NCBI RefSeq assembly: GCF_964194025.1
Contig: NC_134473.1
Coordinates: 59,210,001-59,274,000 of the forward strand
Length of the DNA: 64,000 bases
Direction: 5' to 3'
DNA from: Convolutriloba macropyga
Lineage: Eukaryota
The notes under the pieces are model-generated. The model worked only from the letters and a program-made list of their open reading frames with translations. It ran no database searches and was not told where the DNA came from. This document shows, one piece after another, positions 3,917 through 62,486 of this stretch. How positions within the stretch are numbered: the first letter of the stretch is position 1; each line of letters begins with the position of its first letter. Position numbers and translations under genes: made by a program.

Positions 3917-3999
3917 GCATGTTTCCCATCAAATTTGGTATGAATTGCGGACTGGCTAAAGATGGAAAAGATGATTAAAAGAGCGATTCAATGGTCAGA

Positions 4000-4571
4000 C
4001 GGTTACATGACAATTTACCCAATTCCATTTTACCCAATGCCAATTTACCCTACGCTATTTTACCCGACCTGCCATTTTACCCAATGCCATTTTACCCAAT
4101 ACCAACTTACCCAATGCTCTTTGATCTTTTTGTTCAATTATCCGATTGCAGTCGCCATTAGCAGTCGCTATTACAAGGATGGTTTAAAATGTTTGTGGAC
4201 AATATAATCTCATGTTCGGTTGTAATATTTTCATATCAAGTCCCACAGGCCATTTAATTATATAGTCCGCTAATTCCATGTTCGGTTGTAATAGTTTCAT
4301 ATCAAGTCCCACAGGCCATTTAATTATATAGTCCGCTAATTCCATGTTCGGTTGTGATAGTTTCATATCAAGTCTCACAGGCCATTTAATGATAAATTGG
4401 CTAATTCCATGTTCGGTTGTGATAGTTTCATATCAAGTCCCACGGGCCATTCATTTTATAGTCGGCTAAATAGTCGTTCTGGTTAATTTAGCAATGGGGT
4501 AAATTGGGTAAGTTGGCATTCGGTATAATGGCATTGGGTAAAATTGAATTTGGTAAATTGTCCTGACACCG
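4000..4571. mobile_element. Non-autonomous DNA transposon (MITE) with CGG...CCG termini, subterminal ccattttaccc repeats and an internal 66-bp minisatellite
   Basis: Imperfect TIR cggttacatgacaatttacc / ggtaaattgtcctgacaccg; 6-bp direct repeat GTCAGA on both sides (3994-3999, 4572-4577); ~4 copies of a 66-bp unit at ~4211-4465. Confidence 0.8.
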
Positions 4572-4975
4572 GTCAGACATGGTCGGATATTGCTTTAAAG
4601 ACCAGCAAAATTGCTTTTACGAGCATTTCTAAATAAAAAGTGACGTTTTTTAGGAAACGCATTTAGTACTGCTTATATTTTTAGAGAGGAAAATTTTTGT
4701 CGAGCAAAAATTGCAGAACAGCAAAACCTATCGTATTGAAAGCAAGCAAATATTCAGACAATTAAATTTTTACCATTCGAAGAATTAAACCATTAGTAAC
4801 TTCAGTTAATATCATGTTTCTTCTTCTTATTATTAGTAGAACACCAAACCTATAATATTGATTTGAAATATTGTGCTAGAATAATTTTTTTGCGCGTAAA
4901 TTTCAATGAACTGTTATCAAATTAATTTACGTTTCACATTTAAAAGAAACAAAGCAAAACACTGAAGCGCAAAAC

Positions 4976-5069
4976 ACCGACAGCTCTCTTGCATATCCGA
5001 CAGCTATCCTGTAATATCTTGCAATATGGTGCACGATCTTGCAAGATTCTTATAAGATAGCAGTCGGTA
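4976..5069. repeat. Short palindromic element (MITE remnant)
   Basis: accgacagct... / ...agcagtcggt inverted ends with internal tcttgca repeats. Confidence 0.45.
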
Positions 5070-5747
5070 ATAGACTAGGTCAATTTTCAGTTTAGAACTC
5101 AAACAAAATCGCAGCGTGTCACAGCATATCAGACAGGTTGAAGGCGGCGAAGGTTAATGGCGACGTGTTCTATTGTACTATCAAACACCCCAACTTTTTT
5201 ATTTTGTGCATCGTGTTTATGTTTATTAGCCGGCGTCAGCCTCTCAACGGCTCTTGGTTTTTTTCAATTCAAGGAATTCGAAATGTATTGGGGGCGTTGT
5301 CTTATTTTAAGATCTGTTCACACATTTTCATGATTTCTGAAGTCATAATGGAGTAGTGATTTTGGTCATGCCGAAACAGGAAATGGAGCGAAAAAGAGAG
5401 TGGTTTTGCGACATGAATTTTTTTCATTCGAATATTCAAGTACAGTAAAAAATCGTTATTTGATCGAAAATTCGCTTTCTGGCTAGTAGTTTTCTGTTTT
5501 TTTTTGTTCACATGCGACAATTTCACATTGATTTTTATTGTTTTTCAACTTTTTGGATAGGATTTTCTTCTAATTGGTTTTCCCAATCCATTCATACTTC
5601 CTTCTAGGCCTAGTATTTTGTTTGAACCAAATTTCCCTCTCTCGCAAGTGGTTTTTTGTTCACATGCGGCATTTTGACTTTGATTTTCTGTTTTTTAATT
5701 TTTTGATCTGATTTTTTTGGAAATAGTTTTCCCAATTCACTCCTAGT

Positions 5748-8060
5748 CTTATGATGAGATAGTTTGTGATTTGCAGAACCTTTGACTGGTGCTTGGAGCT
5801 AGAGGTGAACAAGAGCAGCAAAGGAATGAGAAAAAATGAGAGTCGCTGCCGAAAGCTGAAATGTGACTAAACAAACAATCTGGGTTAAAATTGAAGTAAT
5901 AAAATATATGAAATCAGTTTTCACGCAATTATCCTTGATTTGAGGTAAAATTGAGCTCCAACACTCGGGCTACTGTTGCCACAATCCCCCTGACGGGGAT
6001 AGAGAGGGATCGTGTAGGTTGGGATCGACAGACCTTCGTCCCGATATTTTCCGGGTATTTTTTCTCAAAATATGCGACAAAGTGATGCTTTTAAAATCCG
6101 ACAATTAGAGGAAACATTTCGCGTAGGTCAGAGCATCACCGGAAGAAGTGGCTTTTTCTCAGTTATTTTTTCGCGATAGATTGGTTTTTCGAAGTGATGC
6201 ATTTATTTTTTCTACTATGCGTTGTTTTGTCATGTGAGTTTGCAGCGGCGATTTTGCTTGCAGCTTCAATTTATGGGGGATTGAGTTCAAACGTGATACA
6301 AAGTTATTATTGAAGAGATGGCATGTTTTTTTGTATTAAATTGTATTGACCGTTTGTTCTCTCCGTTTGCTTGGTCAAAATTTAGAGACAGGAATGGTAT
6401 CAAGGCAAGTCTTGAGCGCTCACTGTGCACTTATAGTTACCCTAGTCGATAAGACTCAATAAAAATGACCAGATACTTGTAGGGAACATTTCATTTGTTG
6501 AGTTTCGAACGTAAGAAAGATTCGGGATGTTAACATAGTGACAAATAGCTACAGTTGAAAACTAAACCTAGGAATAATTTCATAGGTATCAAAAGTGAAC
6601 ATAATTACGATTTGAAAGAAAAAAACAAACCTGAGGTCTTTGTTTATTTTTTTAAACTAAAACAACATGCCTTAAGAGGACATATAATTGACTGTATTGA
6701 GTTGCGTATCTTTAACCAGACCGTTTTATGATGAGATGGTTTGTGATTTGCAGAACATTTGAATGGTGCTTGGAGCTAGAGGTGCACGAGAAATCAGTTT
6801 TCACGCAATTATCTTGATTTGAGGTTAGGTTGAGCTCCAGCGCTCGGGCTACTGTTGCCACAATCCTCCTGACGGGAATAGAGGGGGACTGGGTATGTTG
6901 GGACCGACAGACCTTCGTCCCGGTATTTTCCGGGTATTTTTTCTCAAAATATGCGAGAAAGTGATGCTTTTAAAATCCGACAATTAGAGGAAATAATTGG
7001 CGTAGGTCAGAGGATCAACGAAGGAAGTGGTCTGTTTCCTGTTATATTTTCGCGGTACATTGGTTTTTCGATGTGATATTTTTATTTTTTCTACTATGCG
7101 TTGTTTGGGCATGTGAGTTTGCAGCGGCGATTTTGCTTGCAGCTTCAATTTATGGGGGATTGAGTTCAAACGTGATACAAAGTTATTATTGAAGAGATGG
7201 CATGTTTTTTTTGTATTATATTGTATTGACAGTTTGTTCTCTCCGTTTGCTTGGTCAAAATTTAGAGACAGAAATGGTATCAAGGCATATCTTTTGAGCG
7301 CTCACTGTGCAATTATAGTTACTCTAGTCGATAAGACTCAATAAAAATGACCAGAAACTTGTAGGGTAAGAAAGATTCGGGATGTTAACATAGTGACAAA
7401 TAGCTACAGTAGAGAACTAAACGTAGGAATAATTTCTTAGGTATCAAAAGTGAACATAATTACGATTTGAAAGAAAAAAACAAACCTGAGGTTTTTGGTC
7501 GTTTTTTTAAAAATAAAACAACATGCCTTAAGAGGACATGTAATTGACAGTCTTGAGTTGCGTATCTTTAACCAGACCGTCTTATGATGAGATGGTTTGT
7601 GATTTGCAGAACCTTTGACTGGTGCTTGGAGCTAGAGGTGAACGAGAGCAGCAGAGGAATGAGAAAAAATGAGAATCGCTGCCGAAAGCTCAAATGTGAC
7701 TGACCAAACAATCTGGGTTAAAATTGAAGTAATAAAATCTATGACATCAGTTTTCACGCAATTATTCTTGATTTGAGGTAAGGTTGAGCTCCAACACTCG
7801 GGCTACTGTTGCCGCAATCCCCCTAACGGGGATAGAGGGGGATCGGGTAGGTTGGGACCGACAGACCTTCGTCCCGATATTTTGCGGGTATTTTTCTCAA
7901 AATATGCGACAAAGTGATGCTTTTAAAATCCGACAATTAGAGGAAATATTTGGCGTAGGTCAGAGGATCAACGAAGGAAGTGGTCTGTTTCCTGTTGTAT
8001 TTTTGCGGTAGATTGGTTTTTCGATGTGATGCATTTTTTTCTACTATGCGTTGTTTTTTT
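5748..8060. repeat. Tandem array of ~0.86-0.98 kb units (about 2.5 copies) in the last intron of paralog A
   Basis: ttatgatgagat(a/g)gtttgtgatttgcagaac recurs at ~5749, ~6726 and ~7582, each followed by hundreds of near-identical bases. Confidence 0.9.
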
Positions 8061-8406
8061 TGTGAAATTTTTAAATTTAAATTGTTTCTGCTTTTCTGAG
8101 TTTCTTCTCATAGGACCTGGGATATTATGAGAACGGTCATCACCGTCTTTTTTGGCGCTTTTTTTCTTTAGAACGTAGGATAGGAAATAATTTCGTTTTT
8201 TCTTTAGAGCTAGGTTAAGAAAAAAAAATGGCGTGTGTGTGTGGTTGTGAATATTGCAATTTTGGAAGTTTGTGAATTTTGGATGAGAAAGATTCTTTCA
8301 TTAATAACATCCTGAATTGACTAGGAAAAACAATAATGTTAATTATTTGGCTGAGAAAGTGACATAAAACAGGTTTCTAGCGGATGTGGGAAATTTGCCA
8401 AAAAAG

Positions 8407-8786
8407 GAGTTGGACGCGAAATATTGAATATTGCACTTGACATACATCGATGTCTGTGGCCGGATCGACCTCTACTTTACACGACTAATGTGAAAGTTAC
8501 GAAGGAACACGTAATGAACAAACTAGTAGAAACTCAACCAAATAGGTTTTCGCTTCAAATCTTCGGAGATCCTTTTCGATACGAAGAACACGATCCACAT
8601 TATTGCCATACTCATATATTACGGAACAAGTTTACGAGTAATAGCGAGTTTTTATCAGATTCTCAATTCAGAAAAGCTTTGAACCATTCATTGCCAATTA
8701 CAATAGTGAGTTATAAAGATACTGGTTCTTCGCCAAATGAGAAGCAAAATTTTATCTTCGGAAATGTTGCATGGCAAATGAAATAA
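8407..8786 (+). CDS. GNAT paralog A, last exon
   Basis: (G)VGREILNIALDIHRCLWPDRPLLYT...FGDPFRYEEHD...; homologous to the last exons of B and C; TAA stop. Confidence 0.85.
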
Positions 8787-11344: not shown

Positions 11345-11652
11345 CGGCTACGTCATCAAGTACAGTGACTTATGGCTAAATAATGGGTTAAATTAGGTGC
11401 ACGCAACTTTGAGACAAACATTTATCTTAAATTTAAGTTTAGGGCGACTTGAAACGTGCAGAATTGACCAAAAATGACATGGCTTATATTAAAAAAAACT
11501 TTTCTGAGACCGAGAAATTGAGAAAGGAGCAGCAAAACGCCACCAAAATTACAGGAAAGTCTCAAAAAACGATTTTTCCAATCAACTGAGATAATTTTCC
11601 GACAAAGTGTTATGTTATCATCCTAAAATCTGCGCTCAAGAAAATTACTTTT

Positions 11653-18794: not shown

Positions 18795-18999
18795 ATGAGA
18801 TCCGCTCTCAAACACCAGTTGTGCACTCTCTCTTCGTCTCTGAAGAACGTAGTTTATGTGGTAACAAATGCCAACCACACTCCAGATGTTGTTTCTGTTG
18901 CCGGCAGTATCCTATATGATGTCTACATCAAAGAATTGGGCTGGAAGTTTGGCAAGGACAACCCATCGCAAATCAGAGTTGAACGTTGCTCAAAAACAG
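18795..18999 (+). CDS. GNAT (LuxI/FeeM-like) acyltransferase paralog B, coding exon 1
   Basis: MRSALKHQL...GSILYDVYIKELGWKFGKDNPSQIRVERCSKT; close paralog at 38441; donor ACAG|gtggat, phase 1. Confidence 0.85.
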
Positions 19000-19887
19000 G
19001 TGGATGATAAGGAACTAATTCAAACCGTTCTTAAAATTGTAAAAACAGATTCAAAATTATAACAGAGATCAAATAATTTATTTACGAGATCAAAACTATC
19101 ATTGAGTTGCGCAGTTTCCGTTGTAGACATTTGGAACTATTTTTAAGGGTGAATTGATTTGTTCGGTTGAAAATTACTCGAAAGCAAGAAATGTAGGGAG
19201 ACACTAAAAAATTTCACTTTCAATCCAGACATTTAACCAGTGATTTATTGTTGAAATTGAACAAATACTGATAAATACAATTAACTACAATTAAGACTAA
19301 GGTTTTTAATTTGATTGAAGAAATTCGTTTAGTACTTTTACTGCCGTTTGAAGGCACCAGGCATGAAGTGAAGCGATGCTCTTATTGGCTACAGGATACG
19401 GTTTTATCATATTTTTTTCCAGATCTGCTCAATTTCAAAGCTGGGAGAAACATCTTTCGGTATAGGGTAGCGGATAAGAAAGCAATCCACAGTTGTGAAA
19501 GCGTTTCTCGACTTTTTTGGTGTTTCTAGCCAAATTGAATACTGCTCATTTTTTAAAAGGCCCCATATGTTTACCGCAAAAATTTTTGGATAGCAAAGTG
19601 TGTCACATTTTGCGATGCAAAATATTAGAAATCACCGAAAAACCGAAAGCTGACATTGATTGAAATTTCATACGGAAAAAATAGATAGTTCGGTTGTCTT
19701 GAAAGGGACAGCCAGTTGATTACATCAGCAAGGAGTTTGAATTTTAGACGGTTGTAAACTTCGTCAATATTTTTAGCCTTTTAAATTTTTCACCATATTT
19801 GAAATAGATCATTTATCATTTCCAAATACCTCTCAAAACTATACGGCCAAGGGATCATTACTTCTTGTCCTTATTAAAAACATATTT

Positions 19888-20114
19888 CCCGGGCCGGGGC
19901 GTCCACCCGTATTCCACCGTTATTAAGCGAGAATAAGGGTGTAAAGCCAATTCCACTCTTAATTAGCAAGGAAAAGTGTGTAAGAGTGTAATTTTAAGAA
20001 AATTACATCTTTTCGTATACTTTTTGCACTCTTTGGTCCACTCTTAATACATTTTCAAAAATACACTATAATTACACTCTTTTGTCTACTCTTTAATGCA
20101 CTCTTTTCCCTGGG
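19888..20114. mobile_element. Short CCC...GGG MITE with acactctt repeats; related copy at ~55094-55300
   Basis: cccggg...ccctggg ends; shares aagagtgta...ttttaagaaattacac with ~55180-55220. Confidence 0.55.
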
Positions 20115-20630
20115 TGAAGCCTCCTGAGAGGTGTCTCAGATCGATCAAAGCAAAAAATTATGTAAGATATTATTATTATTATTACTGAATATTATTATTA
20201 AAATCATTATTATTTAAAAAATACTCAAGAGAAACGCGAAATTAAAGAAAAAATTAGCAATTTTTGCCAATACTAGTTTTTGTGGTAAATTCCTCGGCCC
20301 GAGTTCAGATGTACATTTAAAATCAAAGGACTCCTTGAGGGTTAAAATAGGAGCAAAACTATAAAAAAACATCAATGTTGATATCTTCCCTCAACTTCAC
20401 GCTCAATTACTGCACAGGGGTATGAATGCTTGTTAAAGCAATCTAAAACTGATCAGAAGTAGCTTTTAGCTGCGAAGGGCTGAGTAGAGGAAGTTTCGAC
20501 TCGAGAAACATCATTGCCGCCAGTGTCCAAAAAAACTATTTATTTTCTTTTTATTTCAAACTGATTATTATCAGTGTTCCACTCAGACACTATAGTGTTC
20601 CTTATCATCATCCTAAAATTTTTTTGAAAG

Positions 20631-20876
20631 ACAAAATGATACTGACGGATAAATTTGCGTCAACAAGTCTATGGGTCATCGCGTGTGAACTAACCGGCAA
20701 TAATGGAACAGTAGAGCCCCATGGTTGCTTCAGGCTAATCCATTCTACAGAAATCGAAGCTTTGGGATATGAAAGCCAGCGAAACAGAAGTCTGGTCGAT
20801 TTGAGAAGATTTTATGGTGACAGTGGCTTAATTGAGATGAACAGACTAGCGTTGAGGAAACAGTTGAGGAATCAGG
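20631..20876 (+). CDS. GNAT paralog B, exon 2 (246 nt)
   Basis: (D)KMILTDKFASTSLWVIAC...PHGCFRLIHSTEIEALGY...LIEMNRLALRKQLRNQ(G); acceptor tgaaag|AC, donor CAGG|gtacac; phases match the neighbouring exons. Confidence 0.85.
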
Positions 20877-21779
20877 GTACACTTCCCCTCCTATTTCTTA
20901 GGGTTTAAATTTTGTTTGTGGTTTTCAGTGAGCTTCGCCGTATTCACTGCAATCTTCGTGTGGGAGAAAAAAATGTTTATCACCGCCGTTCACAGCAAAT
21001 TGATGTTTTCTGATTATACCTCGGTCCTGGTAGTAAAATAACTGACAAAAAGACCGCTATTCCACGCCGGTCCAAAGAGGTGCTCAATTTTCGGGCAAGA
21101 ATATATTTAGCCAAATTAGAAAATATTACTAAATATTACGGATTTTTATTTAGTTGTACATGTGTTCAATGATTTTAGAAAATGAAGATTCTCAAGGACG
21201 CTCATGGAGGAAGTTTGCATTAATATAAACTTGGGGCAAATCAATTGTGTTCATATAGTTTAGTCTTTGACCTCTTCGATTTGAAATTTTTTTAAAGGGG
21301 GGAACTGAATTTCCGTCATTCTTCTGTCTTCTTGGACTCATAACTTTCTGCTTGGTTTCAAAGTCAGTGAAATGTTTGCAAAGAACCTGCTCAATTATGA
21401 CAAAAAACATCAATTTCCGAAGCACTTCCTTCAATTTGTCAAAAAAAGAAACCTCATTGATGTCATCCTAATACCATTATTCTAAAGTTTGGAGGAAAAG
21501 ATCAAAGAATTAAGAAAATGAGGAGGCTCAGTAATGTGCGTTCGCAAATAATGTTCCAACCTCTTAATTGTCTACCAAAAGAGAAGGGGATAAAAAATTT
21601 CAAAATTCAACATACCGTTCAACAATTCATTGATTGAATCAAACAATCTACCTTAGAGGGCCAATGAGACCTGTCATTGACCAACGTTGCTAAAAAAACG
21701 TTTAAAAAAGTTTTAAAAATTTGCTTTTTGAAAATATATTACTTTAAAATAATAAAAATCATTATATATCAAGACAAAT

Positions 21780-38440: not shown

Positions 38441-38645
38441 ATGAGAGCAGCTGCTAGACACCAATTGCTTACTCGTTTTTCATCTCTGAAGAATGTACTC
38501 TATGTGGTAACAAATGCCAGTCACACTCCAGATGTGGTGTCAATAACTGGCAGTATCCTCTACGATGTCTTTATCAAAGAACTGGGCTGGAAATTTGGCA
38601 AGGATAACCCTTCAAAACTCAGAGTTGAACGCTGCTCAAAAACAG
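38441..38645 (+). CDS. GNAT (LuxI/FeeM-like) acyltransferase paralog C, coding exon 1
   Basis: MRAAARHQLLTRFSSLKN...ILYDVFIKELGWKFGKDNPSKLRVERCSKT; 205 nt as in B; same donor. Confidence 0.85.
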
Positions 38646-40536
38646 GTGGATGATAGGGCACTATTTTGGAACATTATTTTCCTTTTTGAAGAGGAAACAT
38701 GAAAGTTCATGTTCAACCGGGTTCTATTTCTTTTTTACGCCGATTTATTTTACCCCCGCAAACTTTTCAGTCCAAAACCAATTCCCAATATCTTACGTAT
38801 CTCCTGTTTTCGGTGTAAATACCTAAATGCTGTACACAATTCCCAATCTTTTAAGTTAATCGTACCAATTATTTAAAGCATTATGGTTGGAGTGAATCAA
38901 TCGGTGGTAAATAATAGGGTGTCAAATAAATAGGGGCAAAAAACGGTCAACCTCATAACCAATAAGTTCAGTATTAGGAATATTAACAACAATCAGTATT
39001 TACGAATTGCCTGTTAAAAAATGAAACAAGGGCGGCTGTTCGATTTTGCGCTTATATATAAAGTGATACGAAATGCTCTTAATTTTTCATGTTGGTTGGT
39101 AAGGAGGTCGTTTAAACTCTTCTTGAAACACTTCTCGTGGGTCTTTTCAATCTGGCACAGGATTCGGTTTTGGATCTTCTTAGTCTGGCCAAGGGTACAG
39201 TCAAAGTTTGCTGTCTGGCTTATACATAAATTTTATTAGGTGCGAGCTGCACCCCCTTTTGCGCGAAGCAAGTCCGGCTGTTCCAAACCTCTCTTTTGGG
39301 TCGAGGATCACATCTTTTAGATGTTAAAAATTCTACTGCTAAATATATTTAAACATCACAAATTTACGTTCCGAGACATTAACAGCTGTTTAATTTACAA
39401 TTGCCAATCTGTTGTTTACTTGATTGGCCTAGCTTAGAAAATTTCAAAAAAGGAAAAAAAATGGAAGTAGGTTGTGAGTATAGGATTCTTTCACACCGGT
39501 TCTGAGAATTTTGCACCAAAAAAGCGGAAACAAAAAAGTACCCACCACGAATCCAGAATTTGAGACTCAAAAATGGGTCACTGAAATTTCAAAGTCATGG
39601 AGTAGTTCAAGCCTGTCGAACTTTTCGAAAATGTCTCAAATTTTTCTCGACAAAATATCAACGACCCGCAAAAACTTCACAAGAAAACTGTAATTACACT
39701 TTGTTTAGGCTTTGATTTTTTAAAAATTAATTTCTTAAAGGGGAGGCCGTACATTATTTAACTATGAGAGCAACAATAAACAGATTTTCAGAAAAAACAA
39801 AATTAATAATAAATTGCTTTCAATTAGGCCATGAGCATTACCATAATTAACCAAGCTACAACAAAGCACAACCCACTTGCTAAGTCATCGAAAGGTCCTT
39901 ACGGTCCTAGTAGAATGATGCCAAGAAGAAGCACTAAGGTTTATGGGAGATTTTGTTCGTGAGAAGAAAAAAATCAGGGTAGATAAAAAAAGAGAGTGGA
40001 GACATCTTCTTTATTGACAAAATAGTTATCGTAGTTATTACTAAAATTATTATGGAAAATTTTTTCTTGGTTTTGCTTAAGTTTTTGCTCTTTTTTAAAG
40101 AAATCAGGTTAAAGTTTTAGTATGAAGTTTAGTAGTTTTCGAATGCTCTTTAGGCTGAGAACGCTCACAGTGTTAGTTAATTTTAGTGGTCGCGCTTTTG
40201 TTCTTGTTGACTGAACAGTTTCTGTCTCTTTTTTTTTGTTGTAAGGTCATCAAGAGAACTGATTTCAAAGTTTTTCTCTTAGTATTTCAATTAGTTTTTT
40301 GATTAGTAGATTTTTGACAAAAAAAGTACAACACAGAACTGTCAAACCAAGTTAATAATAAGCATCTCATCTGATATATAGAGCAAATACTTGACCCTTT
40401 TGTTCAAACAAAAGGAAACAAGACGTCTGGCATGGTTCTTTGAGTGCCACAAATCGTTGCAACAATCGTATTTGAAAGCATTATAACAACATATCGGAAT
40501 GGAATTCGAAACGTTTATATTAGAAATGGGTTTTTG

Positions 40537-40695
40537 GGATCTCCTCCGTTTATCCACCCAGCTTAGTGGGTGCATATTATTTGCACCCCCACAAACGCAG
40601 GTGCCGTAAATTTACATAATGATTTACTAAGTACTGGCATGTGCTCTGTATCAGTCGAGCGCATAACGTACTGGGGGTACAAAAGGGAAAGATCT
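40537..40695. mobile_element. GGATC-ended MITE (family with cccagcttagtgggtgcatatta core)
   Basis: ggatctcctccgttt...gggaaagatct ends; core shared with the copies at 55877, 57807, 59947 and 60194; a fragment also at ~41680-41810. Confidence 0.75.
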
Positions 40696-41971
40696 TTTTT
40701 ATGTTTGAGCAAGCTTCTCCGAAAAAGCTAACTCTTTTCTATATAAATCTGAAAGAAAAGAAACCGATTGAGTTTTCGGAGGAACTAAAACAGCCTGATA
40801 ATCTTTATGTAACAATGAATTTTTCTGCGCTTTTTTGAATTTAGTTACGAAAAAAGTGGTGCAATGATGAAAACACAAACGAAAGAAATCTAAATATTTC
40901 CATTGAAGGTTTTGATTTTGCTTCATCACTTAATCCGGTCTATGTTTTTGAACTTCAACAGACTTTGAGAACTTCAAAACGGCAATTATCATATTTTTAA
41001 GCCGCTTTACAGATGTTTTACGTGCATGACATCATTTAACACTGAGTGGCAGTGAGTTTTAGCTGGGAATATTTTTTCATCAATTAAATCATTTAACAAC
41101 TCTTAAACCACTCTACTTGAATTTTAACACGAAAGTTAATTTGACCAAAATTTACTCCAAATAAAATTCAATAGAGGACCTCTACTCAATGAAAAATAAC
41201 TAAAAATGCATCTGAACTCAGTTTTAAGGACCATTTCGATTTTTTAGAAAAAAATATTTTCCGAAAGAAAATTTGAACAATTGAACTAGAATTGTTAGAT
41301 CGCGTCATCGACTCCATTAAGAGTTTTGTTTCTGTTTCTGTCTCTGTTTCTTTATTCAACAGCTTGCTATTCGTTTAATTAAGCAATATGCCAGCTATTT
41401 TTATGATTTTTGTAAATTTTTATAGACAATCTTTTTTCCAATTGTTTGACAAATTAATTGTGAGCTGCATCAGTTTTTCATGATCTGATCCGTCAGAGGC
41501 AATATTGAAAACAAAAATATGCATTTTAGGTACAATTATCAGCCTAAAAATTCTAAACAGGTGTACCTTCATGGTGTGATCAGAGGCCATTTTTTCTAGA
41601 AACTTGACTCGGGAAGCATCATTGTTGACACAAAAAAATTTAAAAATTCAAAAAGTTTCAAAAGGTTAAAATACAATTAAGCACCCCAATTACAGAGCAC
41701 GCACGTGCCATTGCATAATAAATCACTATGGAAAATATGGCACGTGCTCTTGTGGGTTGCAAATAATGAGCACCCACTAAGCTGGGGAAGCACAGTATAC
41801 CAGAAGATGCGCCGTCTTGTATCAGTCACCCGAACTTGTCAAATTCTTACAAGATAACCATCTGTTCTGACTAGTGCCTTTTCTAGTTTTTCATAAATTT
41901 TTTTCAAAGAACTTCAATAGCAGGTTTAATACCAAAGCGTTCCTTATCATCCTAAAAACTTACGCCAAAAG

Positions 41972-42217
41972 ACAAAATGATACTGGTGGACAAGTTTGCG
42001 TCAACATGTCTGTGGATTGTGGCATGTGAACGAACCAGTAACGGCGGAAGGATAGAGCCCAATGGTTGCTTCAGACTTATACATTCTACAGAAATCGAGG
42101 TTTTGGGATATCAAAGCCAGCGAAACAGAAGTATTGTCAATTTGAGAGAAGTTTACGGTGGCAGTGGCTTAGTTGAGATGAACAGAATAGCATTGAGGAA
42201 GCAGTTGAGACACAAGG
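41972..42217 (+). CDS. GNAT paralog C, exon 2 (246 nt)
   Basis: (D)KMILVDKFASTCLWIVAC...PNGCFRLIHSTEIEVLGY...LVEMNRIALRKQLRHK(G); acceptor ccaaaag|AC, donor AAGG|gtacag. Confidence 0.85.
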
Positions 42218-45200
42218 GTACAGTTTCCCCCCTTAGCTTAAAGTTCAAACTTTTGGTGACAAATTTGACCAATTTCATAGGTTTCCTCATTACCCACATA
42301 CAACGTGAACAAAATATGATCAAAGAGAATTGGTAATGTGCGTTTGCACATAATGTTCGAAGACTTCTTTTTGATAAAATTGTATATCAATTGAAAGCTC
42401 AGATCTTTTCGTTCGCTAAAAATGGACCAATTAAGGAGGTGGGGACACAAACGGCAAATATCCTGAAAGTTAATATTTATCCTCGAGTTAATCCTGTCTG
42501 AATTAATTGAAAACAACCAAATCTTTCCTTATGTGCCCTTTGACCAGTAACAGTAAACAAGCTTGACGGTTTGCTTACTTCCAGAATGATTCTAGTGGCA
42601 TATCTTTTTTCAAAAATTTATTATAAATTTAAAATAGTTTGCATAACTAGATCACAAAGACCGCTTTCATCGATTTTCCATAAACAAATTATCTTGGAAC
42701 TGAAATTTAAACTCGAACTAGATGTTTTAGTTCGGAATATTTTAACGAGAATCTGCTTTCTTCTTCAATATATTAGACCAAAACAGGTATCATTAGTGAA
42801 AGTTTATAGCATTTCTTGGACAAAAAACGAGTTACAAAAAACAGTTTTAAAAACTCTCAAAGATTTCAACCCTTTTAGACAGTTTGACAATGGCGTCTAC
42901 CGATTGGCTTTAAAAAATACGCTGTAATTTTTACGGGTTGAAATACACTTTCATAAAGTCTACGACAACAGTGATAGACTATTTCCGGTTTATTTTTGAA
43001 AATAAGATTATTTTAGCTGCTTTCTTTTGGTACAATGGAAATTAACTCTTAGGAGACGAGCCTTGCAATAAATCTTTATCTAAGGAAGATGTGATTTTCA
43101 AGAAATCTTCCTCAAGGTAAGTAAAATTCCTCTTGAAAAGCAGGATTTCTCTTGTCTCGCTTGATTCTATAGATATACCATATAAAAATACATCTCAAAT
43201 GTTTTTTTTTCAAACAAATAAACTGCTCAGAGAAGCGGTGATTGTCTTGAGCAGTATACTGGTTTAATTTTTAAGACAGACAGATACATCCACAGAAACA
43301 CTTTATCATTAGAACTCAGTTGCTTGCTAATGAAAACCTACCAAGTGTTTGATTGAATTCAACGTACTGTTGCCTAAATTGGTGCAGGTCAGCTGGCCTT
43401 TATTTTTTTCCATTTATTTTCCTCTGCCATACATCGTTAAAATTAATCCACTGGGCCGAATAAATTGAACGTATGAGCTGAAACTTAAATCGCGTCTCTG
43501 AATAGCCATCTAAACTGTAAATTTTTGGTAAATCTTGAATAGTTTTGGCCTCATTATAAAAGTATGTACAATCAAGTTCAATCAAATCAAAAAGCATTAA
43601 TAAATAAAAGAGAAAGTTTGATTCTAGAAAGAAGAGTTATTGCTCCTGTTTATACAGTTTTTCCATTCAAACCAATTGATTGCTCTTTTTGCTGGGAGAC
43701 AATTTAGGCACCGGGATAGCTTTCGTTGGCTCTGCTTGTTTTAATGCTTATTCTTGGTGTTCTTGGCTAACATCGTAGCTGTTGATTTGTTCGTTGTTTT
43801 TCCATGTGCGGTAAGATATCAAATAACATTTTTATTCGTAAAATAGAAAAACTCGTCAATCAATTTTAAGAATTCAACATGTGAAAGCGAAACGAAGATA
43901 TATAAAGATGGACTGAAAAGAAAAGAAAAATAAAGCTCTCTCGTGGTGGTGGGGTTGAACTACAGCCTCCGGGTTGAACTACAGCCTCCGGTTTGTTCAC
44001 ATAAAAAGACCGCTGCTCATCGAGTGTTTGCTTCAGCAGCAGAGATGTGTAATTGTGTTTCGAAAAATAAGGCTTATTACTAAAAAAACAGCGTAAAAAA
44101 TAGTCTTCTCGCCGGGTGAGGATCGAGCCTCTGCGACCCCGTTGATCATAGGATTAGAGCACTGTGCAACAACTCGCTGTTTTAGTTGTAGAAATTGCAA
44201 TTATGTTTATGAAGGCAAGCGTTAAGACTCGTTCAAATGATTTGAGGGAAGGTAAAAAGAAGTTCAGTTATTACAGTTAATAACTTGAAAAAAGTAAAAT
44301 TGTAACAAGTAGAAAAACAAACTAATCATAAGAAGGAAAATAACAGGCAGTAAAAACTGCTATGCTAAACCAAACCTCAAAACCTTTGAACCGTACCGCG
44401 CATATTACTATATAATGTCGTTACTTGTATAACGATAACTCAACCGTGATAATGATATCATTGAAATGATTTTGAAAAATAAGAAGGTTGTCTTGGTTGA
44501 AAATGAAACTATTCGATTAAGATGATATTTTTTAATTGAGTTTCTTGGTGTTTTGCTAATGATGTTGAGATTTTCCAATTGATAAAAACTGAGCAATCTA
44601 ATGGTGTTTTTTCGTGTGTTTTTTACAGACAAACTCCGATTACACTAGGTGAGCGGCTGGCTTGGCTGCAATATTAGGACAGAACACGTGTTTGTTTGAA
44701 ATTTGGCTCGAATTAAGTAAACAAGCGGCTAGCAATAAATCATTGGCTGATAGCTGTTCTACGAGATACGAACTGGAATGTAGACGAAATAAACAAAATT
44801 AAGAAGACTGCATGATATTGCTCTCACGCCAACCATTTTCCACTGCTTCTTTCCTTTCGTTCCGAAATCATTAACCGTTTGGCCATTGTAATCTGATTGT
44901 TTTTTGATGTCGACAGATTTTTCTCGTCAGTAGTAACTTGGCAATGTCGTCATTGATAAATGAAAAGAAGAAACAAAGGCAAGTAGGCTGTTTTCGCTGT
45001 GACTCCGACCATCGCTTTCTGTGTCAGTTAACGAACTAGCTTGGCAGAGCCTCCGAGCCATTCCGAACTCTTCTGAGTTGCTTGCGCGGCAATTTTTATA
45101 TAGAAAATGTGTGTTCTCATGACGTTATTTGTAATGGGTTTCGTTAGCGAGGTTCATACCACTGGTCTGAGGGAAAAGGAAACTGAAAATTTTTTTTCGA

Positions 45201-45229
45201 GTGTTTGACCAAGTTGGTAGTTTACCTTT

Positions 45230-46900
45230 ATTCACGACCTCCGGGATGGGCTGAAATAGTAGACAGCTGTTTCTTTTTCATCTTTAGCAGGACAGAAGGT
45301 CCTTTTGATAAATGTTTTTCAGACCATGTATTTTTTTCTGGACAAGTTCATGTTTTGATTCGATCTTGTTTACTTTCGCGCGTTTCGGGTAATTAATTGC
45401 TAATTTGATCTGAATAACCCTTACAGCAGGTGCATTGTCCCCTTCATGGAGTTTTTTGACACTGTATGAGCGGGGTTTTCTTAATGTTCTATTTTGGGTT
45501 AGTTGTATTTTGGTGATAATTGAATTAGATTGGAGAATGCGGCAGGTATTTGCATAAAAAAATTGAGATCGAACCCATGATTTATAGAGAGTTAGCAAGC
45601 ATTTGTCATCAATGTTGATTCGTTTGAGTACCCACAGTCAGTAGATTAATTTGTTAGCTCTTGCCACCGACCTTTTAAGTGTTGGTTCTGTTTGAGATAA
45701 AGGTTAGGTGTTGCGCAATAAATTTTATTGAGCTTGCTTCTTCAATTCGTTTACCATTGATAAAAAGATCTAGAGTGGAGTCCTTTTTTGGCAGGTTTTT
45801 AAAATTGTAACTTGCATTGCCAGGATTTTTACTTATTTTCAAGTTTTCGCACCATTTAACTAATTTGTCTTCTGAATATTGAAGTTTCTCTTGTATTTTT
45901 TTTACAGGAGAGCGACCTGTAATAAGGGGCAAAATGAACGGAAAAATGAAAAAGTTGTGCAAGTAAATGAGATTTTCTGTTGACATAAACCGGGAAGAGT
46001 ATTGGTGCAATGGCGCTACCCTGAAGTACTCCCGCAAGTGTTGAAAATGTGCTACTTTTCAGTTATTGATTTTCACAATGATACTAATTTGGGAGAGAAT
46101 ATGGTTCACCCTTTTAATCGCAAGTTAATGAAAAAGAATATTTTACAGTTTGTTTTGATTTCCTAGTCTCCACACTGCATCAGACGCTTTTCAAAACCTA
46201 TGCAGACAAATCCCCCCATTTCGGACCATTGAAACGCTTATTTAATGTGACTAGTTAGTTTGAGCAGGTTATCGGTTGGGCAGCGGTTTCTTCTATACGC
46301 ACTTTGCATTTTGCCGAAGACACCATTGTTTTCACAGTGCGTTAGATCAATATAATTTAGAACAGTTCCACAATTTTTTGCAGTTGAATTAGTTAAGGTG
46401 ATTGGTCGGTAGTTCTCTGACTTTTTTTGTTCGTCTTTTGCAATTTTGAAATATAACCTTTTCCGCGTAATTGGAACATAAGAACTGTTGATAGAGCTAG
46501 TTATCAGCAGACAGATATTTACTTTGAGGCACTTAGGTGACCTGTTCATCATGTTATAGTTGATCTTCTCTGGTCCTGGACTTCAACTACTTGTTTTTTT
46601 CAAAATTTCTTCGAATTGGTCTACTTTTATATAACAATAGATAGTTGGTTTAATTTCTTCGTTTCGGAGAAACGGTTTTGTCTCATTTTTGACCTTCTCG
46701 AAGTCGTATTTATGATTTTTTATTGTTACTTGTTTTAGAGGTTTTGAACACTTCGCATTTTTCATTGTCTGTTGTCGCTCTGAGTTGCTTATAAAAGGAA
46801 AGACTTCTGCACTTTGATCAGTTTCATTTGATTTTGTGTAAACCTTGAATAACATGTAATAAAACATTGAGTGTAATTTAGAAAGATAAATGTTTCCCTA
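45230..46900 (-). mobile_element. Highly degenerate non-LTR retrotransposon RT fragment, antisense in the last intron of paralog C
   Basis: KSENYRPITLTN, QSAYRRNRCPTDNL and TLYKSWVRSQFFYAN are spread over several broken frames; boundaries approximate. Confidence 0.8.
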
Positions 46901-48239
46901 CAAGGTGGCAAAGAGGAGGCGATTGTAGAAAGGAGCCTCCTATCACACCCGTAAATAATCAATTTTTTTGAGCCCCTGAACAATTAAAGTTGTTCATCCT
47001 CTGGAAAAACTCTTTGTTACGAGCGGGTTTGATCAGTTCACTCAGAAATGCGTCTTGGAGAAAAGCCCAGACACAAGTAAAGGTGTATATAAAACAAGAG
47101 TTTATCGTTAAGATAAATTCATTACATTTAATAAAATTAATGGATTTTTTCATCTTTGCTGATTTCGTTATATGCTTTGTGGATAATCCATCAATGCGTC
47201 ACTCTTAGGAAGGTGATGTTGAAAAATATATGCCCGTATTAGTTGATTTTTAGCGCAACCTTATTTGGAATACAAAGATTTGTACAAATGGTAGAGTGAA
47301 TTTGAAAATGAACGGTTGGGAGTATTTGAACTAGTTTAGGGTTGATATGTAAGGTAAAATGGTTTTTGTAATTTCTCAAAACGTTGTCTTAACTTTTTTC
47401 ATCCAAAAACTCTTATTCCATATGTATATCAAATACACGATGGTACCGAAAAGCTACATACACCTGAAGATTATTTAAAAAGCATTACAAACATCAAATA
47501 TTACAACATTTTGAGTTCAAGTTTGTTCTCTAATAACACGTCATTACATTTTAGCTTTTTTTAACGTGTAGCAGACAGTTTGTTTGTATAGTTTTCACCC
47601 AGGTTTCTAATGACATCTGGGTCAGTTTCGTTCTAAATTTTTTGACATTTTATGGTCTAAATTTTCTCAAAAAACGGTCTGTTTTCGCAATTGCTGCTTC
47701 AAAACTGCCTATACATTTTCAGTTGGATTTAAATCTGCACAAAATGCCGGCCATCCGGATTTCCTTCTCTTGAAAAAATAGCCGATAAGATTCGATTTAT
47801 GCACAGGAGCCTTTTTTGAAAAATTAATGAGCTGAAAGTACATTTTTTCTTCGTAATTTTTCAAAATTTGCAATTAGTCAGCAGTGATTAGCTTGCTTGG
47901 ACACCAAAAAAACCTTTGCTGTCCATCTGATTGTAGTGCACTCCAAAACATAAGTGATCGTGCTTCGGAATTTAACCTTTTTGTGTTTTTATTTTCAAGC
48001 AATCTCGTTCCATTTCTACGAAAAACTCAAATAATTCCGACGCTGGAGATAAGCGCCCTTTTTTCATAAGCAAAAACAACATTATGCCAGTAAAAGAAAG
48101 ACTGCTTGAGCATATTGACACGCCAAATTGAACCAAAACACTTCATTTTTTTCAAACTGACTTCCTTTGCGGCATTTCTTAAAAGAACACCAAAATTCTT
48201 GAGAATTCGTCTATTTTTAGGGTTGGAGATTGTATCGCA

Positions 48240-51200
48240 GCAGAAGACAGCGTTATGAGTAACTCCAGAGAGGTTTTGGGATCCTGTAAACATCCTTAGC
48301 CAATTATTCTGTCGGTTTCTTTGACAATTTTCGAGACTTTTTGCTCAATTTTTTGGCCTCGAACCTGTTAGTTTTTAGATAACGTTTCTATGTATGATGC
48401 GCACGGGATCATTATTTCAAGTTGAGTTGTCTTTGTATTTTAAGAACAAGGAAACTCGACATCTCGTAGCGTAGCAGCTAGGCAAACAGCGAAAGAACAA
48501 AGCGGTTTATCCATCTTTTCTGCTCAAGAGCAGGAAATGAAAAAAAATCTTTTGAAACTTCTACACTTCACAACTTTTGTACACGCCTTAGCGGAAATTA
48601 TGTTTATGAGGCACGAATCATGCTTTCAAATAAGCTGGAAGTAGCTTTTTAGTACCATAGTGTAAAATCATATGTTGTTCAGAGTTTGAACAATTATCGA
48701 GCTATTCCCGCAGGACGCTGTATCGCCTTGCAAGACAATCGTCCAAAAAATTGCGACAGCCATTCAATTTTGCACAAAAATTTCGTAGATTTTTTTCAGT
48801 TTCCTGACTTAGTTTTGATTTCGGCTTCTTTTTCACCATCTCAGTCATGCTTAGGACAAGAAAATCCTAATTGAAACGTAGATACAACTTTAGTTTTTTC
48901 GACGAGTGCAAATACCAAATTCGCGACAGTCATTTTTACGCTAAATGAACTTAAAGCGCTGATTTTTTCAAATATTGTTGCTAAATTTAAATCAATGGAG
49001 CTACTCCGTACAGCGTCAGGGCAACAATTACCAGTGCCAAAAAATATTCAATACGTCAAAATGTCATTTTGTTAAAATGCTCAGACAGCCAATTTAGCAT
49101 AAAAATGCTTAAAGCGAGATAACTTATATCGGAATAACGTATGTTCACAACTATTGTATGTAAATTTGATTAAATTGGCCATAATTGAGTGGACCGTATA
49201 AAGACTTTATGTGAAACTATGACAAACAAAGATGAAATCACATTATCAACTTAATTATGATAAAAATAAGCTATTAATACCAACTGCTAATTAGAATTTT
49301 GGATTTACTACAAGATCAACGGGGAAAAAATTAGGTTTTATGGGATAGGGTATTCTTGACATTGAGAAAATTGTCAGCTCCAGAGAGCTTTTTCGATCCT
49401 TTAAAATTTCCTAGCCGACTTTGTTCGTCTTTTTCTCTGATAATTTTTGAGGTTTTCCGCTCAATTTTTTGGCCTCGAAATTGTTAAATTTTAGATAACG
49501 TTTGTATGTATGATGTGCACGGGATCATGATTTCAAGTTGAGTGGTCTTTGTATTTTAAGTACTTGGAAATTCGACATCTCGTAGCGTAGCAGCTAGGCA
49601 AACAGCGAAAGAACAAAGCGGTTTATCCATCTTTTCTGCTAAAGAGCAGGAAATGAAAAAAAAATCTTTTGAAACTTCTACACTTCACAACTTTTGTACA
49701 CGCCTTAGCGGAAATTATGTTTATGAGGCACGAATCATGCTTTCAAATAAGCTGGAAGTAGCTTTTTAGTACCATAGTGTAAAATCATATGTTGTTCAGA
49801 GTTTGAACAATTATCGAGCTATTCCCGCTTGACGCTGTATCGCCTTGCAAGACAATCGTCCAAAAAATTGCGACAGCCATTCAATTTTGCACAAAAATTT
49901 CGTAGATTTTTTTCAGTTTCCTGACTTAGTTTTGATTTCGGCTTCTTTTTCACCATCTCAGTCATGCTTAGGACGAGAAAATCATAATTGAAACGTAGAT
50001 ACAACTTTAGTTTTTTCGACGAGTGCAAATACCAAATTCGCGACAGTCATTTTTACGCTAAATGAACTTAAAGCGCTGATTTTTTCAAATATTGTTGCTA
50101 AATTTAAATCAATGGAGCTACTCCGTACAGCGTCAGGGCAACAATTACCAGTGCCAAAAATATTCAATACGTCAAAATGTCATTTTGTTAAAATGCTCAG
50201 ACAGCCAATTTAGCATAAAAATGCTTAAAGCGAGATAACTTATATCGGAATAACGTATGTTCACAACTATTGTATGTAAATTTGATTAAATTGGCCATAA
50301 TTGAGTGGACCGTATAAAGACTTTATGTGAAACTATGACAAACAAAGATGAAATCACATTATCAACTTAATTATGATAAAAATAAGCTATTAATACCAAC
50401 TGCTAATTAGAATTTTGGATTTACTACAAGATCAACGGGGAAAAAATTAGGTTTTATGGGATAGGGTATTCATGACATTGAGAAAATTGTCAGCTCCAGA
50501 GAGCTTTTCGATCCTTTAAAATTTCCTAGCCGACTTTGTTCGTCTTTTTCTCTGATAATTTTTGAGGTTTTCCGCTCAATTTTTTGGCCTCGAAATTGTT
50601 AAATTTTAGATAACGTTTGTATGTATGATGTGCACGGGATCATGATTTCAAGTTGAGTGGTCTTTGTATTTTAAGTACTTGGAAATTCGACATCTCGTAG
50701 CGTAGCGGCTAGGCAAACAGTGGAAGAACGAAGCGGTTCATCCATCTTTTCTACTTAAGCGGAGGAAATGAAAAAAATATTCTCTTGAAACTTCTAAATT
50801 TCACAACTTTTGTTCACGCCTTAGCGGAAATTATGCTTATGAGGCAGGAATCATGCTTTTAAATATGCTGGAAGTAGCTTTTTAGTATCATAGTGTATAA
50901 TGATACGTTGTTCAGTGTTTGAACAATTATCGAGCTATTCTCGCAGGACGATGTATCGCCTTGCAAGATAATCGACCAAAATATTGCGACAGCCATTCGA
51001 TTTTGCACGAGAATTTCGTAGAATTTTTTTCAGATTTCTAACTAAATTTTGATTTTGGCGTCTTTTTCACCATCTCAGTCATGCTTGGGACGAGATAATC
51101 CTAATTGAATCGTAGGCACAACTTTATAGTTTTTTCGACGAGTGCAAATAACTAAATTTTGATTTTGGCGTCTTTTTCACCATCTCAGTCATGGAAATTC

Positions 51201-53590
51201 GACATCTCGTAGCGTAGCAGCTAGGCGAACAGTGAAAGAACGAAGCAATTTATCCATCTTTTCTGCTTAAGCGGAGGAAATGAAAAAAAAGTGTATAATG
51301 ATACGTTGTTCAGTGTTTGAACAATTATCGAGCTATTCTCGCAGGACGATGTATCGCCTTGCAAGATAATCGACCAAAATATTGCGACAGCCATTCGATT
51401 TTGCACGAGAATTTCGTAGAATTTTTTTCGTATAATTTTTGAGGTTTTCCGCTCAATTTTTTGGCCTCGAAATTGTTAAATTTTAGATAACGTTTGTGTG
51501 TATGATGTGCACGGGATCATGATTTCAAGTTGAGTGGTCTTTGTATTTTAAGTACTTGGAAATTCGACATCTCGTAGCGTAGCGGCTAGGCAAACAGTGA
51601 AAGAACGAAGCGGTTCATCCATCTTTTCTACTTAAGCGGAGGAAATGAAAAAAATATTCTCTTGAAACTTCTAAATTTCACAACTTTTGTTCACGCCTTA
51701 GCGGAAATTATGCTTATGAGGCAGGAATCATGCTTTTAAATATGCTGGAAGTAGCTTTTTAGTATCATAGTGTATAATGATACGTTGTTCAGTGTTTGAA
51801 CAATTATCGAGCTATTCTCGCAGGACGATGTATCGCCTTGCAAGATAATCGACCAAAATATTGCGACAGCCATTCGATTTTGCACGAGAATTTCGTCGAA
51901 TTTTTTTCAGATTTCTAACTAAATTTTGATTTTGGCGTCTTTTTCACCATCTCAGTCATGCTTGGGACGAGATAATCCTAATTGAATCGTAGGCACAACT
52001 TTATAGTTTTTTCAACGAGTGCAAATACCAAATTCGCGAAAGTCATTTTTACGCTAAATGAACCTTAAGCTCCGATTATTTTAAATTTTGTTTCTAACTT
52101 TAATCCAATGGAGTTACTCCGTACAGTGTCAGGACAAATATTAGTAGTGCCAAAAATATCCAATACGTCAAAATATCTTTTTGTTAAAATGATCAGACAG
52201 CCAAATTAGCATAATAATGCTTCAAGCGAGATAACTTATAACGGAATAACGTATGCTCAAAACTATTGTTGTAAAACTGATAATTTGGCCATAATTGAGT
52301 GGACCGTATAAAGACTTGATGTGAAACTATGACAACCAAACATAAAATCACATTATCAACTTAAGCATGATAAAAATAAGATTGTAATACCAACTGCTAA
52401 TTAGATTTTTGGGTTCACTAAAAGATCAACGGTAAAAATTTAGATTTTATGGGATAGAGAATTTTTGACTTTGAGTAAATTGTCAACTCCAGAGAGTTAT
52501 TGGGATCCTTTTAACATTCTTAGCCAACATTTTTCGTCTTTTTCTCTGCCAATTTTCGAGAATTTCCGCTCGATTTTTTGGCCTCGAAACTGTTAATTTT
52601 TAGATAACGTTTGTATGTATGATGTGCACGGGATCATGATTTCAAGTTGAGTTGTCTTTGTTTTTAAGTACATGGAAATTCGACATCTCGTAGCGTAGCA
52701 GCTAGGCGAACAGTGAAAGAACGAAGCAATTTATCCATCTTTTCTGCTTAAGCGGAGGAAATGAAAAAAAAATCTTTTGAAACTTCTAAACTTCACAACT
52801 TTTGTACACGCCTTAGCGGAAATTATGTTTATGAGGCACGAATCATGCTTTCAAATAAGCTGGAAGTAGCTTTTTAGTACCATAGTGTATAATGATATGT
52901 TGTTCGGTGTTTGAACAATTATCGAGCTATTCTCGCAGGACGATGTATCGCCTTGCAAGATAATCGTCCAAAATATTGCGACAGCCATTCGATTTTGCAC
53001 GAGATTTTTTTTTCAGGTTCCTAAATAAATTTTGATTTTGGCGTCTTCTTCACCATCTCAGTCATGCTTGGGACGAGAAGATCCTAATTGAAACGTAGGC
53101 ACAACTTTATAGTTTTTTCGACGAGTGCAAATACCAAATTCGCGAAAGCCATTTTTACGCTAAATGAACTTTAAGCGCCGATTTTTTTCAAATAGTGTTG
53201 CTAACTTTAATCCATTGGAGCTACTCCGTACAGGACAAAAATTACCAGTGCCAAAAAAATATCCAATACGTCAAAATATCTTTTTGTTAAAATGATCAGA
53301 CAGCCAATTTAGCATAACAATGCTTAAAGCGAGATAACTTATATCGGAATAACGTATGTTCACAACTATTGTATGTAAAACTGATTAATTTGGCAATACG
53401 TGAGTGGACCGTAGAGGACTTGATGTGAAACTATGACAACCAAACATGAAATCACATTATCAACTTAAATATGATAAAAATAAGCTTGCAATACCAACTG
53501 TTAATTAGATTTTTGTATTCACTAAAAGATCATTGGGAAAAAATTAGGTTTAATAATTAAGATAGGGTATTTTGGCATTGGGTAAATTGT
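48240..53590. repeat. Tandem array of ~1115-bp units (~4.5 copies, with an internal rearranged partial unit) in the last intron of paralog C
   Basis: cgacatctcgtagcgtagc at ~48457, 49573, 50688, 51200, 51565 and 52681; the first two units are nearly identical. Confidence 0.95.
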
Positions 53591-53676
53591 CATCTAACTT
53601 TTTCGTACGCATTGGAAGGCAAAATATATGGGTGTTTGAGAGAACAAATTTGGGGGAAAGTACTCTGAACAAATAG

Positions 53677-62482: not shown

Positions 62483-62486
62483 CCAC

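Follow-up and report, generated by a model that had tools for sequence, protein, structure and literature searches.

The predicted introns of three tandem paralogs (A, B and C) of a small gene were analyzed in a 64,000-nt stretch of the Convolutriloba macropyga genome (NC_134473.1, positions 59,210,001 to 59,274,000, forward strand; hereafter the window, whose own numbering is used throughout). It was found that the two ends of the last intron are complementary to each other in all three paralogs, that this complementarity exceeds chance, and that it recurs with different sequences at other intron positions of the same genes. We tentatively proposed that these introns were born as insertions ending in inverted repeats, and that purifying selection has maintained the terminal helix formed by the repeats ever since.

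The three paralogs lie on the plus strand of the window and have three coding exons each. The spliced reading frames were intact and contained 270, 248 and 253 codons in A, B and C, respectively. The ratio of non-synonymous to synonymous divergence (dN/dS) was 0.21-0.24 for every paralog pair, which indicated purifying selection, A included. A low dN/dS was also obtained for the coding part of A downstream of an insertion private to this paralog. The last introns were located as follows.

Paralog A, last intron: 3917..8406, plus strand, 4490 nt, GC-AG, phase 1; 5′ arm 3917-3928, 3′ arm 8387-8398, 8-nt tail 8399-8406
Paralog B, last intron: 20877..26572, plus strand, 5696 nt, GT-AG, phase 1; 5′ arm 20877-20888, 3′ arm 26548-26559, 13-nt tail
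Paralog C, last intron: 42218..53676, plus strand, 11459 nt, GT-AG, phase 1; 5′ arm 42218-42231, 3′ arm 53652-53663, 13-nt tail

At the donor, the exon end aaccaag was followed by GCATGTTTCCCA at 3917 in A, aatcagg by GTACACTTCCCC at 20877 in B, and cacaagg by GTACAGTTTCCCCCC at 42218 in C. The partner box of A was TGGGAAATTTGC (8387-8398), placed 8 nt before the acceptor and followed by CAAAAAAG and the exon start ga. In B and C the box stood 13 nt before the acceptor: GGGGAAAAGTAC (26548-26559) was followed by ATTGAACAATTAG and ga in B, and GGGGGAAAGTAC (53652-53663) by TCTGAACAAATAG and gg in C. The preliminary description of this DNA had read these borders correctly. The last intron splits the same Gly codon in all paralogs (phase 1, RNQ-G/VG); B and C start with GTAC and their partner ends in GTAC, A has GCA and TGC instead, as could be read directly in the sequence. 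The +2 change from T-A to C-G in A was confirmed in a column-by-column pair table, and the lengths of the C-run and the G-run were 3/3 in A, 4/4 in B and 6/5 in C, as described. Among the possible borders in A, only G/GC...AG/GA is predicted to restore both RNQ-G-VG and the intact 270-codon reading frame.

Over the first 12-14 nt of the intron, the pairing with the box amounted to −14 to −18 kcal/mol. The duplex energies, calculated between the first 22 and the last 40 nt of the intron, were −17.8, −16.6 and −17.7 kcal/mol in A, B and C, respectively. The background given by internal 40-nt windows of the same intron had a mean of −4.8 to −7.2 kcal/mol with a standard deviation of about 3. No internal window paired as well as the cognate box in A, and the fraction that did was 0.7% in B and 0.4% in C. 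The interiors of the three introns had no detectable homology among the paralogs; the similarity between B and C ended ~36 nt inside the 5′ end and resumed ~34 nt before the 3′ end.

The interiors were also inspected for repeats, and nested repeats were present in each. A tandem array of ~0.9-1.1-kb units was private to each last intron, with no detectable similarity between the paralogs: units of 879/953 nt in A (5746-8065), 932/975 nt in B (22006-24496) and 1116 nt in ~5 copies in C (48206-53554). A foldback element was located ~85 nt inside the last intron of A (4000-4571). It had inverted arms of ~66-120 nt made of TTTACCCAATGCC-like units and a loop of four 66-nt tandem repeats. A fragment of the loop repeat was also found at 59305-59339, and an arm fragment at 53562-53598, 78 nt before the acceptor of C.

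Conservation and possible co-evolution of the intron ends

The synonymous divergence (dS) was 0.69 between B and C and 1.7-2.0 between A and B or C, where the proportion of differing synonymous sites (pS) of 0.67-0.70 was saturated. The intron ends of B and C were identical at 73% (+1..+36), 78% (−34..−1) and 86% (+1..+21) of positions, with binomial P values of 0.019, 0.004 and 0.003, respectively, compared with an identity of ~50-57% deeper in the intron. In intron 1, only 2 of the 28 nt in the two arms were substituted between B and C (P 1.5e-5). The last-intron arms of A and B were identical at 15 of 24 positions (P 0.003), with the pairing strength undiminished.

Because the arms were kept despite saturated neutral sites, passive decay of an inverted repeat dating from the duplication was excluded, on the condition that the introns are no younger than the duplications. 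These comparisons thus give good support to selection on the intron ends. The preliminary description had argued for selection on the pairing over a passively decaying terminal inverted repeat. The rejection of passive decay stood, mainly through the conservation of the ends, which was the strongest support for that conclusion, and less through the covariation.

Three stem positions differed between A and B/C, and each of them was changed on both arms, none on one arm only. The coincidence had a P of ~0.008 if the arms were hit independently, a value that depends on the alignment of the C-run. At +2, U-A was replaced by C-G in A, and at the end of the C-run C-G was replaced by A-U, both restoring the pairing. 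At +4, C-G became U.U and the pair was broken, a non-compensatory change. When the arms were swapped in silico, the cognate pairing was the best in every row and column. The core arms of A paired with each other at −15.5 kcal/mol, compared with −9.9 and −9.5 kcal/mol with the arms of B and C, and the arms of B and C were nearly interchangeable. Independent mutation of the arms at the observed divergence kept the observed stability in 0.1-0.9% of trials (P 0.001-0.009), and a more conservative null with a fixed TTTCCC/GGGAAA core gave a P of 0.026.

These data are suggestive of compensatory covariation of the arms. The earlier proposal that the arms co-evolved across 4.5-11.5 kb was strengthened by the paired changes, the swap matrix and the independent-mutation nulls, and it was weakened by the broken +4 pair and the single split. 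Since the evidence consists of one contrast (A against B and C) among three sequences, with one lineage split and no orthologs in the searched databases, the covariation could not be regarded as established.

Paired ends at other intron positions

The paired-end feature was wider than the preliminary description reported. It was observed in intron 1 of two paralogs and in the insertion of A.

Paralog B, intron 1: 19000..20630, plus strand, 1631 nt, phase 1; 5′ arm 19002-19015 GGATGATAAGGAAC, 3′ arm 20597-20613, 17-nt tail
Paralog C, intron 1: 38646..41971, plus strand, 3326 nt; 5′ arm 38648-38661 GGATGATAGGGCAC, 3′ arm 41939-41952 GTTCCTTATCATCC, 19-nt tail
Paralog A, 565-nt foldback insertion or extra intron in exon 2: 3266..3830, plus strand, absent from B and C

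Intron 1 opened with GT-GGATGATAAGGAAC in B or GT-GGATGATAGGGCAC in C, and the partner GTTCCTTATCAT(CAT)CC was placed 17-19 nt before the acceptor. The terminal helix of 14 bp had an energy of −20.7 kcal/mol in B and −19.2 kcal/mol in C, and none of the internal windows was as good.

The arms of the A insertion, GGATCTGTTTCCTT (3266-3279) and GAGGAAACAGTTCC (3809-3822), were followed by the 8-nt tail GGCAAAAG, which ends in AG. The 14-nt arms had 12 matches, paired at −21.7 kcal/mol and extended imperfectly to ~55 nt; the fold had a z of −6.6 against shuffles. Splicing between a canonical GT at 3272 and the AG at 3830 would remove the insertion in frame; if retained, it would cut the protein short at residue 120. 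The core of the insertion had one diverged relative in the window (55404-55657). Judged by its sequence, an insertion with the same architecture and with a relative nearby supports a mobile-element origin of such introns, and its restriction to A implies that such elements entered this gene.

Hence, six of seven introns at three positions, with unrelated arm sequences, had one architecture: a 5′ arm starting from +1 or +3, a tail of 8-19 nt after the 3′ arm, and a pairing energy of −16.6 to −21.7 kcal/mol that was equalled by no more than 0.7% of internal windows. The seventh was intron 1 of paralog A. It is 12,970 nt long and carries a long interspersed nuclear element (LINE), with the endonuclease at 686-1780 and the reverse transcriptase shortly before the window start, as well as a copia-type long terminal repeat element. 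A local exon-intron hairpin was considered as another partner of the 5′ arm and was rejected, being present in A only (−16.8 kcal/mol, z −2.4) and not in B or C.

Proposed origin of the helix and competing explanations

The splice signals of these introns were weak. The donors GTACAC, GTACAG, GTGGAT, GTTGAT and GCATGT were poor matches to GTRAGT. Five of the seven acceptors (3105, 3830, 8406, 20630, 26572, 41971 and 53676) had AAG and two had TAG. The 3′ ends were purine- or A-rich, and a polypyrimidine tract was absent in all seven introns. The 3′ box directly preceded branch-like motifs, TGAAC in the last intron of B and C and CCTAAAA in intron 1.

It was proposed that insertions of the introner or foldback-transposon type became spliceosomal introns. 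A helix of 12-14 bp would then join the first intron bases, from +1 or +3, to the box that precedes the acceptor by 8-19 nt. Introns of 1.6-11.5 kb, packed with satellites and transposons, would be closed into a loop by this helix, and the donor and the branch/acceptor region would come within a few nucleotides of each other. In A, the change of the donor from GT to GC was accompanied by the change of its partner from A to G, and C-G at the end of the C-run gave way to A-U, with the strength of the helix preserved. The sequences show the helices, their conservation above the neutral expectation and the paired changes; we infer that the helix forms in the RNA in vivo and aids splicing, and that the intron ends were derived from a transposon. 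Selection on the pairing as such is plausible, if still short of probable.

For the transposon origin, terminal inverted repeats were present at the ends of six introns, as is the criterion for introners and miniature inverted-repeat transposable elements. Intron tails and upstream exon ends were no more than marginally alike, with 9/12 in B (TTGAGGAATCAG and TTGAACAATTAG) and P values of 0.02-0.04 for A and C in global tests.

Several observations weighed against the proposed origin and function, in addition to the broken +4 pair and the single contrast behind the covariation. The reading of the intron tails as target-site duplications was not supported overall, the local-alignment P values being 0.08-0.8 across the introns. 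The arms were found nowhere else in 92 kb (the window and 28 kb of flank), and no transposon family was shown there. All splice junctions are predictions from the DNA sequence. A few internal G-rich sites in B and C matched the cognate box in pairing with the C-rich 5′ arm. The donor GU must be single-stranded for U1 and U6, when the helix encloses this GU. The part of the helix containing the GU would therefore need opening for U1 and U6, and the invariant core from +7 to +12 would be the likelier functional helix.

Intron 1 of paralog A belonged to the same side. Its ends paired at −8.5 kcal/mol when the intron only was considered, which was equalled by 59% of internal windows, and at −17.3 kcal/mol with 10 nt of exon flank, which was equalled by 6%. 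By positional homology, ~5 of 14 pairs were kept, and the double changes were non-compensatory. As paralog A is under purifying selection despite the loss of most of this helix, a strong helix is dispensable for that intron.

An alternative explanation was that each arm was kept for a signal of its own, the donor context on one side and a branch-site or protein-binding context on the other. The complementarity would then be a relic of the inverted repeat, and the coincidence of GT-to-GC and A-to-G in A would be due to chance. This explanation survived best among the alternatives, although we consider it unlikely. The most conserved stretch in all three copies was the same primary sequence, TTTCCC/GGGAAA, and the branch-like motifs right behind the 3′ box would fit separate signals as well. 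When the TTTCCC/GGGAAA core and the +1 G were fixed in the null and the rest was randomized, the pairing in A was left with a P of 0.026 only. Two compensatory changes among three double changes had a chance of ~0.26 (a hand calculation with 1/3 per pair). The changes at +4 to +6 in A also yielded a better donor, GCATGT, and GC donors typically match the consensus better at their remaining positions. Further, the pairing in intron 1 of A was gone while the coding constraint stayed. On the other hand, separate signals do not readily account for changes that were double-sided at 3/3 positions, or for the cognate arms of A pairing 4-6 kcal/mol better than the non-cognate ones. It is also hard to explain by protein-binding motifs that two unrelated introns of one gene have complementary ends of different sequence.

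Somewhat less likely still was the explanation that the arms are alike through processes at the DNA level rather than through selection on RNA, and that the differences of A mark another variant of the element. The candidate processes were templated repair or gene conversion of one repeat by the other while the intron was short, replacement or re-insertion of a related inverted-repeat element at GAGAAAYCARG^ as its preferred target, and copying of the junction from site to site. The junctions within paralog A were consistent with it. At its 5′ junction (exon GAGAAACCAAAG and intron ..TGTTTCC..CATCAATTT), the A insertion matched the 5′ junction of the last intron of A (GAGAAACCAAG and GCATGTTTCCCATCAAATTT) with a z of 7.4, as strong as the orthologous junction matches of A-B (z 6.6) and A-C (z 5.2). 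The near-copied junctions involved 3266-3830, 3902-3961 and 3889-3916, and the copy included 12 nt of exon. At the 3′ end of the insertion, 12 nt were identical to those closing exon 2 (GAGGAAACAGTT, P 0.002). These matches imply that the junction sequence was duplicated or converted inside paralog A. The core of the foldback insertion in A occurs once more in the window, and the arms within a paralog were more alike (10/12) than the orthologous arms of A and B (7/12 and 8/12). However, arms of 12-14 nt separated by 4.5-11.5 kb are too short and too distant for ordinary conversion, and copies of the arms were absent elsewhere in the 92 kb. The 5′ intron region of A could be aligned with B and C to ~+30, which suggests orthology and not replacement, and the conservation of the arms between B and C over a dS of 0.69 would still demand constraint.

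Chance complementarity and apparent covariation in AT-rich introns that have both a C-run and a G-run were considered very improbable: 0.4-0.7% of the internal windows of the 5.7-kb and 11.5-kb introns rivalled the cognate box for the 5′ arm, but in six introns at three positions the partner was placed alike, 8-19 nt from the acceptor, and both arms were conserved far above the neutral expectation.

An origin from inverted-repeat insertions followed by selection on the helix was retained as the favored, still tentative, explanation. To our knowledge, the described introns that descend from inverted-repeat transposons are mostly recent insertions present in many copies, and little has been established on the later fate of their hairpins. 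Here, the hairpin would have outlasted neutral saturation at two intron positions while the interiors grew to 1.6-13 kb, and at least one base pair of the donor dinucleotide was apparently swapped in a compensatory manner. If the helix is functional, it would show that the termini of a transposon can be co-opted to support, in a lasting way, the splicing of very long introns whose signals are weak. The three natural arm variants and one copy without the helix would make a tractable system. It is rather improbable that such long, weak-signal introns constitute a class of their own in an animal genome, derived from transposons and characterized by a terminal helix around the donor and by compensatory evolution that moves +2 together with its partner.

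Host genes, surroundings and known systems

The exons of the three paralogs were located as follows.

Paralog A, exon 1: window −10051 to −9865 (L003 14119-14304, minus strand), ~9.9 kb upstream of the window start, recovered by a contig walk
Paralog A, exon 2, first part: 3106..3265, plus strand, located by tblastn and by its alignment with B and C
Paralog A, exon 2, second part: 3831..3916, plus strand, ending ...RKQLRNQ G, located by alignment to B and C
Paralog A, last exon: 8407..8786, plus strand, GA GTT GGA ... stop
Paralog B, exon 1: 18795..18999, plus strand
Paralog B, exon 2: 20631..20876, plus strand
Paralog B, last exon: 26573..26868, plus strand
Paralog C, exon 1: 38441..38645, plus strand
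Paralog C, exon 2: 41972..42217, plus strand
Paralog C, last exon: 53677..53987, plus strand

The sole hint of a protein family was obtained with Pfam on exon 2 of C, which matched PF13444 Acetyltransf_5 with an E of 0.18 at profile positions 23-94 of 102; exon 2 alone served as the query, and the RNQGVG motif straddles the splice junction. The weak match to a GNAT profile is consistent with the RNQGVG motif, GNAT acetyltransferases being characterized by an R/Q-x-x-G-x-G/A motif, and would make the host gene, at best, acetyltransferase-like.

The protein was an orphan in all searches. Word-indexed searches with the last exon and exon 2 against 5.8 billion clustered proteins matched the window's own open reading frames (ORFs) only. 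An exhaustive profile search of 1.84 billion representative proteins returned the same ORFs and one repetitive false match, and two metagenome scans found no homologs beyond the window's own ORFs. A scan of prokaryote genomes gave just a spurious 21-residue match to a Verrucomicrobiales protein. The contig walk over ~53 kb upstream, which recovered exon 1 of A, found no extra paralog and no recognisable conserved gene.

Upstream of exon 1, by ~1.4-3 kb, B and C shared conserved non-coding blocks of 73-75% identity (16947-17054 and 17222-17372 in B; 35471-35580 and 36678-36828 in C). To judge from their conservation and position, these may be promoter sequences or exons of the 5′ untranslated region. 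The second block of B ended in a good donor, CCCAAG/GTAAAT, which was not conserved in C.

The window was AT-rich (32-39% GC). Outside the triplet, the Pfam matches in the window were LINE domains only, and an Rfam scan of the window gave no match. A LINE reverse transcriptase ORF (PF00078, E 5e-31) was located at 9779-10444 on the plus strand, downstream of A, and a LINE endonuclease ORF (PF03372) within 686-2867 on the minus strand, upstream of exon 2 of A. The flanks carried a copia element and a Pao-type element. Additional tandem repeats at 11631-11828, 57074-57372, 62365-62669 and 62995-63562 comprised units of 22, 75 and 177 nt and a (TG)n-type microsatellite with CVCV-type ORFs.

A stretch of more than 8 kb (L008 12000-20474, contig ~152.8-161.2 kb) showed an extreme strand asymmetry, with a GC skew of 0.5-0.7, an AT skew of −0.5 to −0.9 and 52% GC. 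Its dense row of co-directional ORFs was considered as genes or a virus and was rejected as an artefact of a G+T-skewed repeat, with no family matches. The stretch looks like a G+T-rich satellite.

Among known systems, GC-AG introns are a minor class of U2-type introns. Paralog A resembles this class in using GC at +1/+2 with a good consensus elsewhere (aag/GCATGT), and its predicted borders keep the frame and the motif. We know of no member of the class in which the T-to-C change is coupled to a distant pairing partner.

Introners are introns generated by transposons in Micromonas, Aureococcus and Amoebophrya (PMC7789003, PMC12130899), in which inverted repeats of 8-20 nt join the intron ends and short direct repeats stand at the borders (PMC7789003). 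The introns described here resemble them in the inverted repeats joining the ends, in the short tail after the 3′ repeat that supplies the AG, and in the possible GT/GC-AG borders; the A insertion would correspond to a young, lineage-specific foldback. In contrast to introners, these termini did not belong to any multi-copy family in the 92 kb, and a target-site duplication was not demonstrable. The present introns are also old, being shared by paralogs whose dS reaches 2, and measure 1.6-13 kb; their interiors are unrelated and their arms conserved, whereas known introners are recognised through their recency.

The yeast zipper stems of RPS17B and RPL7B likewise shorten the distance between donor and branch site and are thought to help introns with weak signals (PMC12350175). 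By definition, zipper stems begin 10 nt or more from the donor (PMC12350175), which adds to the points against the proposed function; the stems described here start at +1 (last intron) or +3 (intron 1) and include the GU, and were not assigned to the zipper stems. They also differ in spanning kilobases and in the conservation of the primary sequence.

In euglenid nonconventional introns, +4, +5 and +6 pair with −8, −7 and −6, usually as CAG/CTG, and the borders are non-canonical (PMC4770533). The present introns share with the nonconventional and intermediate introns of euglenids the joining of the ends by pairing, its apparent compensatory upkeep and, for some, GT/C-AG borders (PMC4770533, PMC3935182). 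Membership of the nonconventional class was rejected: +4..+6 (CAC) and −8..−6 (ACA) of the B last intron were unpaired, and the borders were GT/GC-AG. Unlike in euglenid introns, the 3′ box stood 8-19 nt from the intron end, and the genome, with its BEL/Pao, copia and LINE elements and 33% GC, is unlike that of a euglenid. Only under the rather improbable reading of these introns as a class of their own would they represent, in an animal, a structure-dependent pairing of splice sites akin to that of the euglenid nonconventional introns, but with GT/GC-AG borders.

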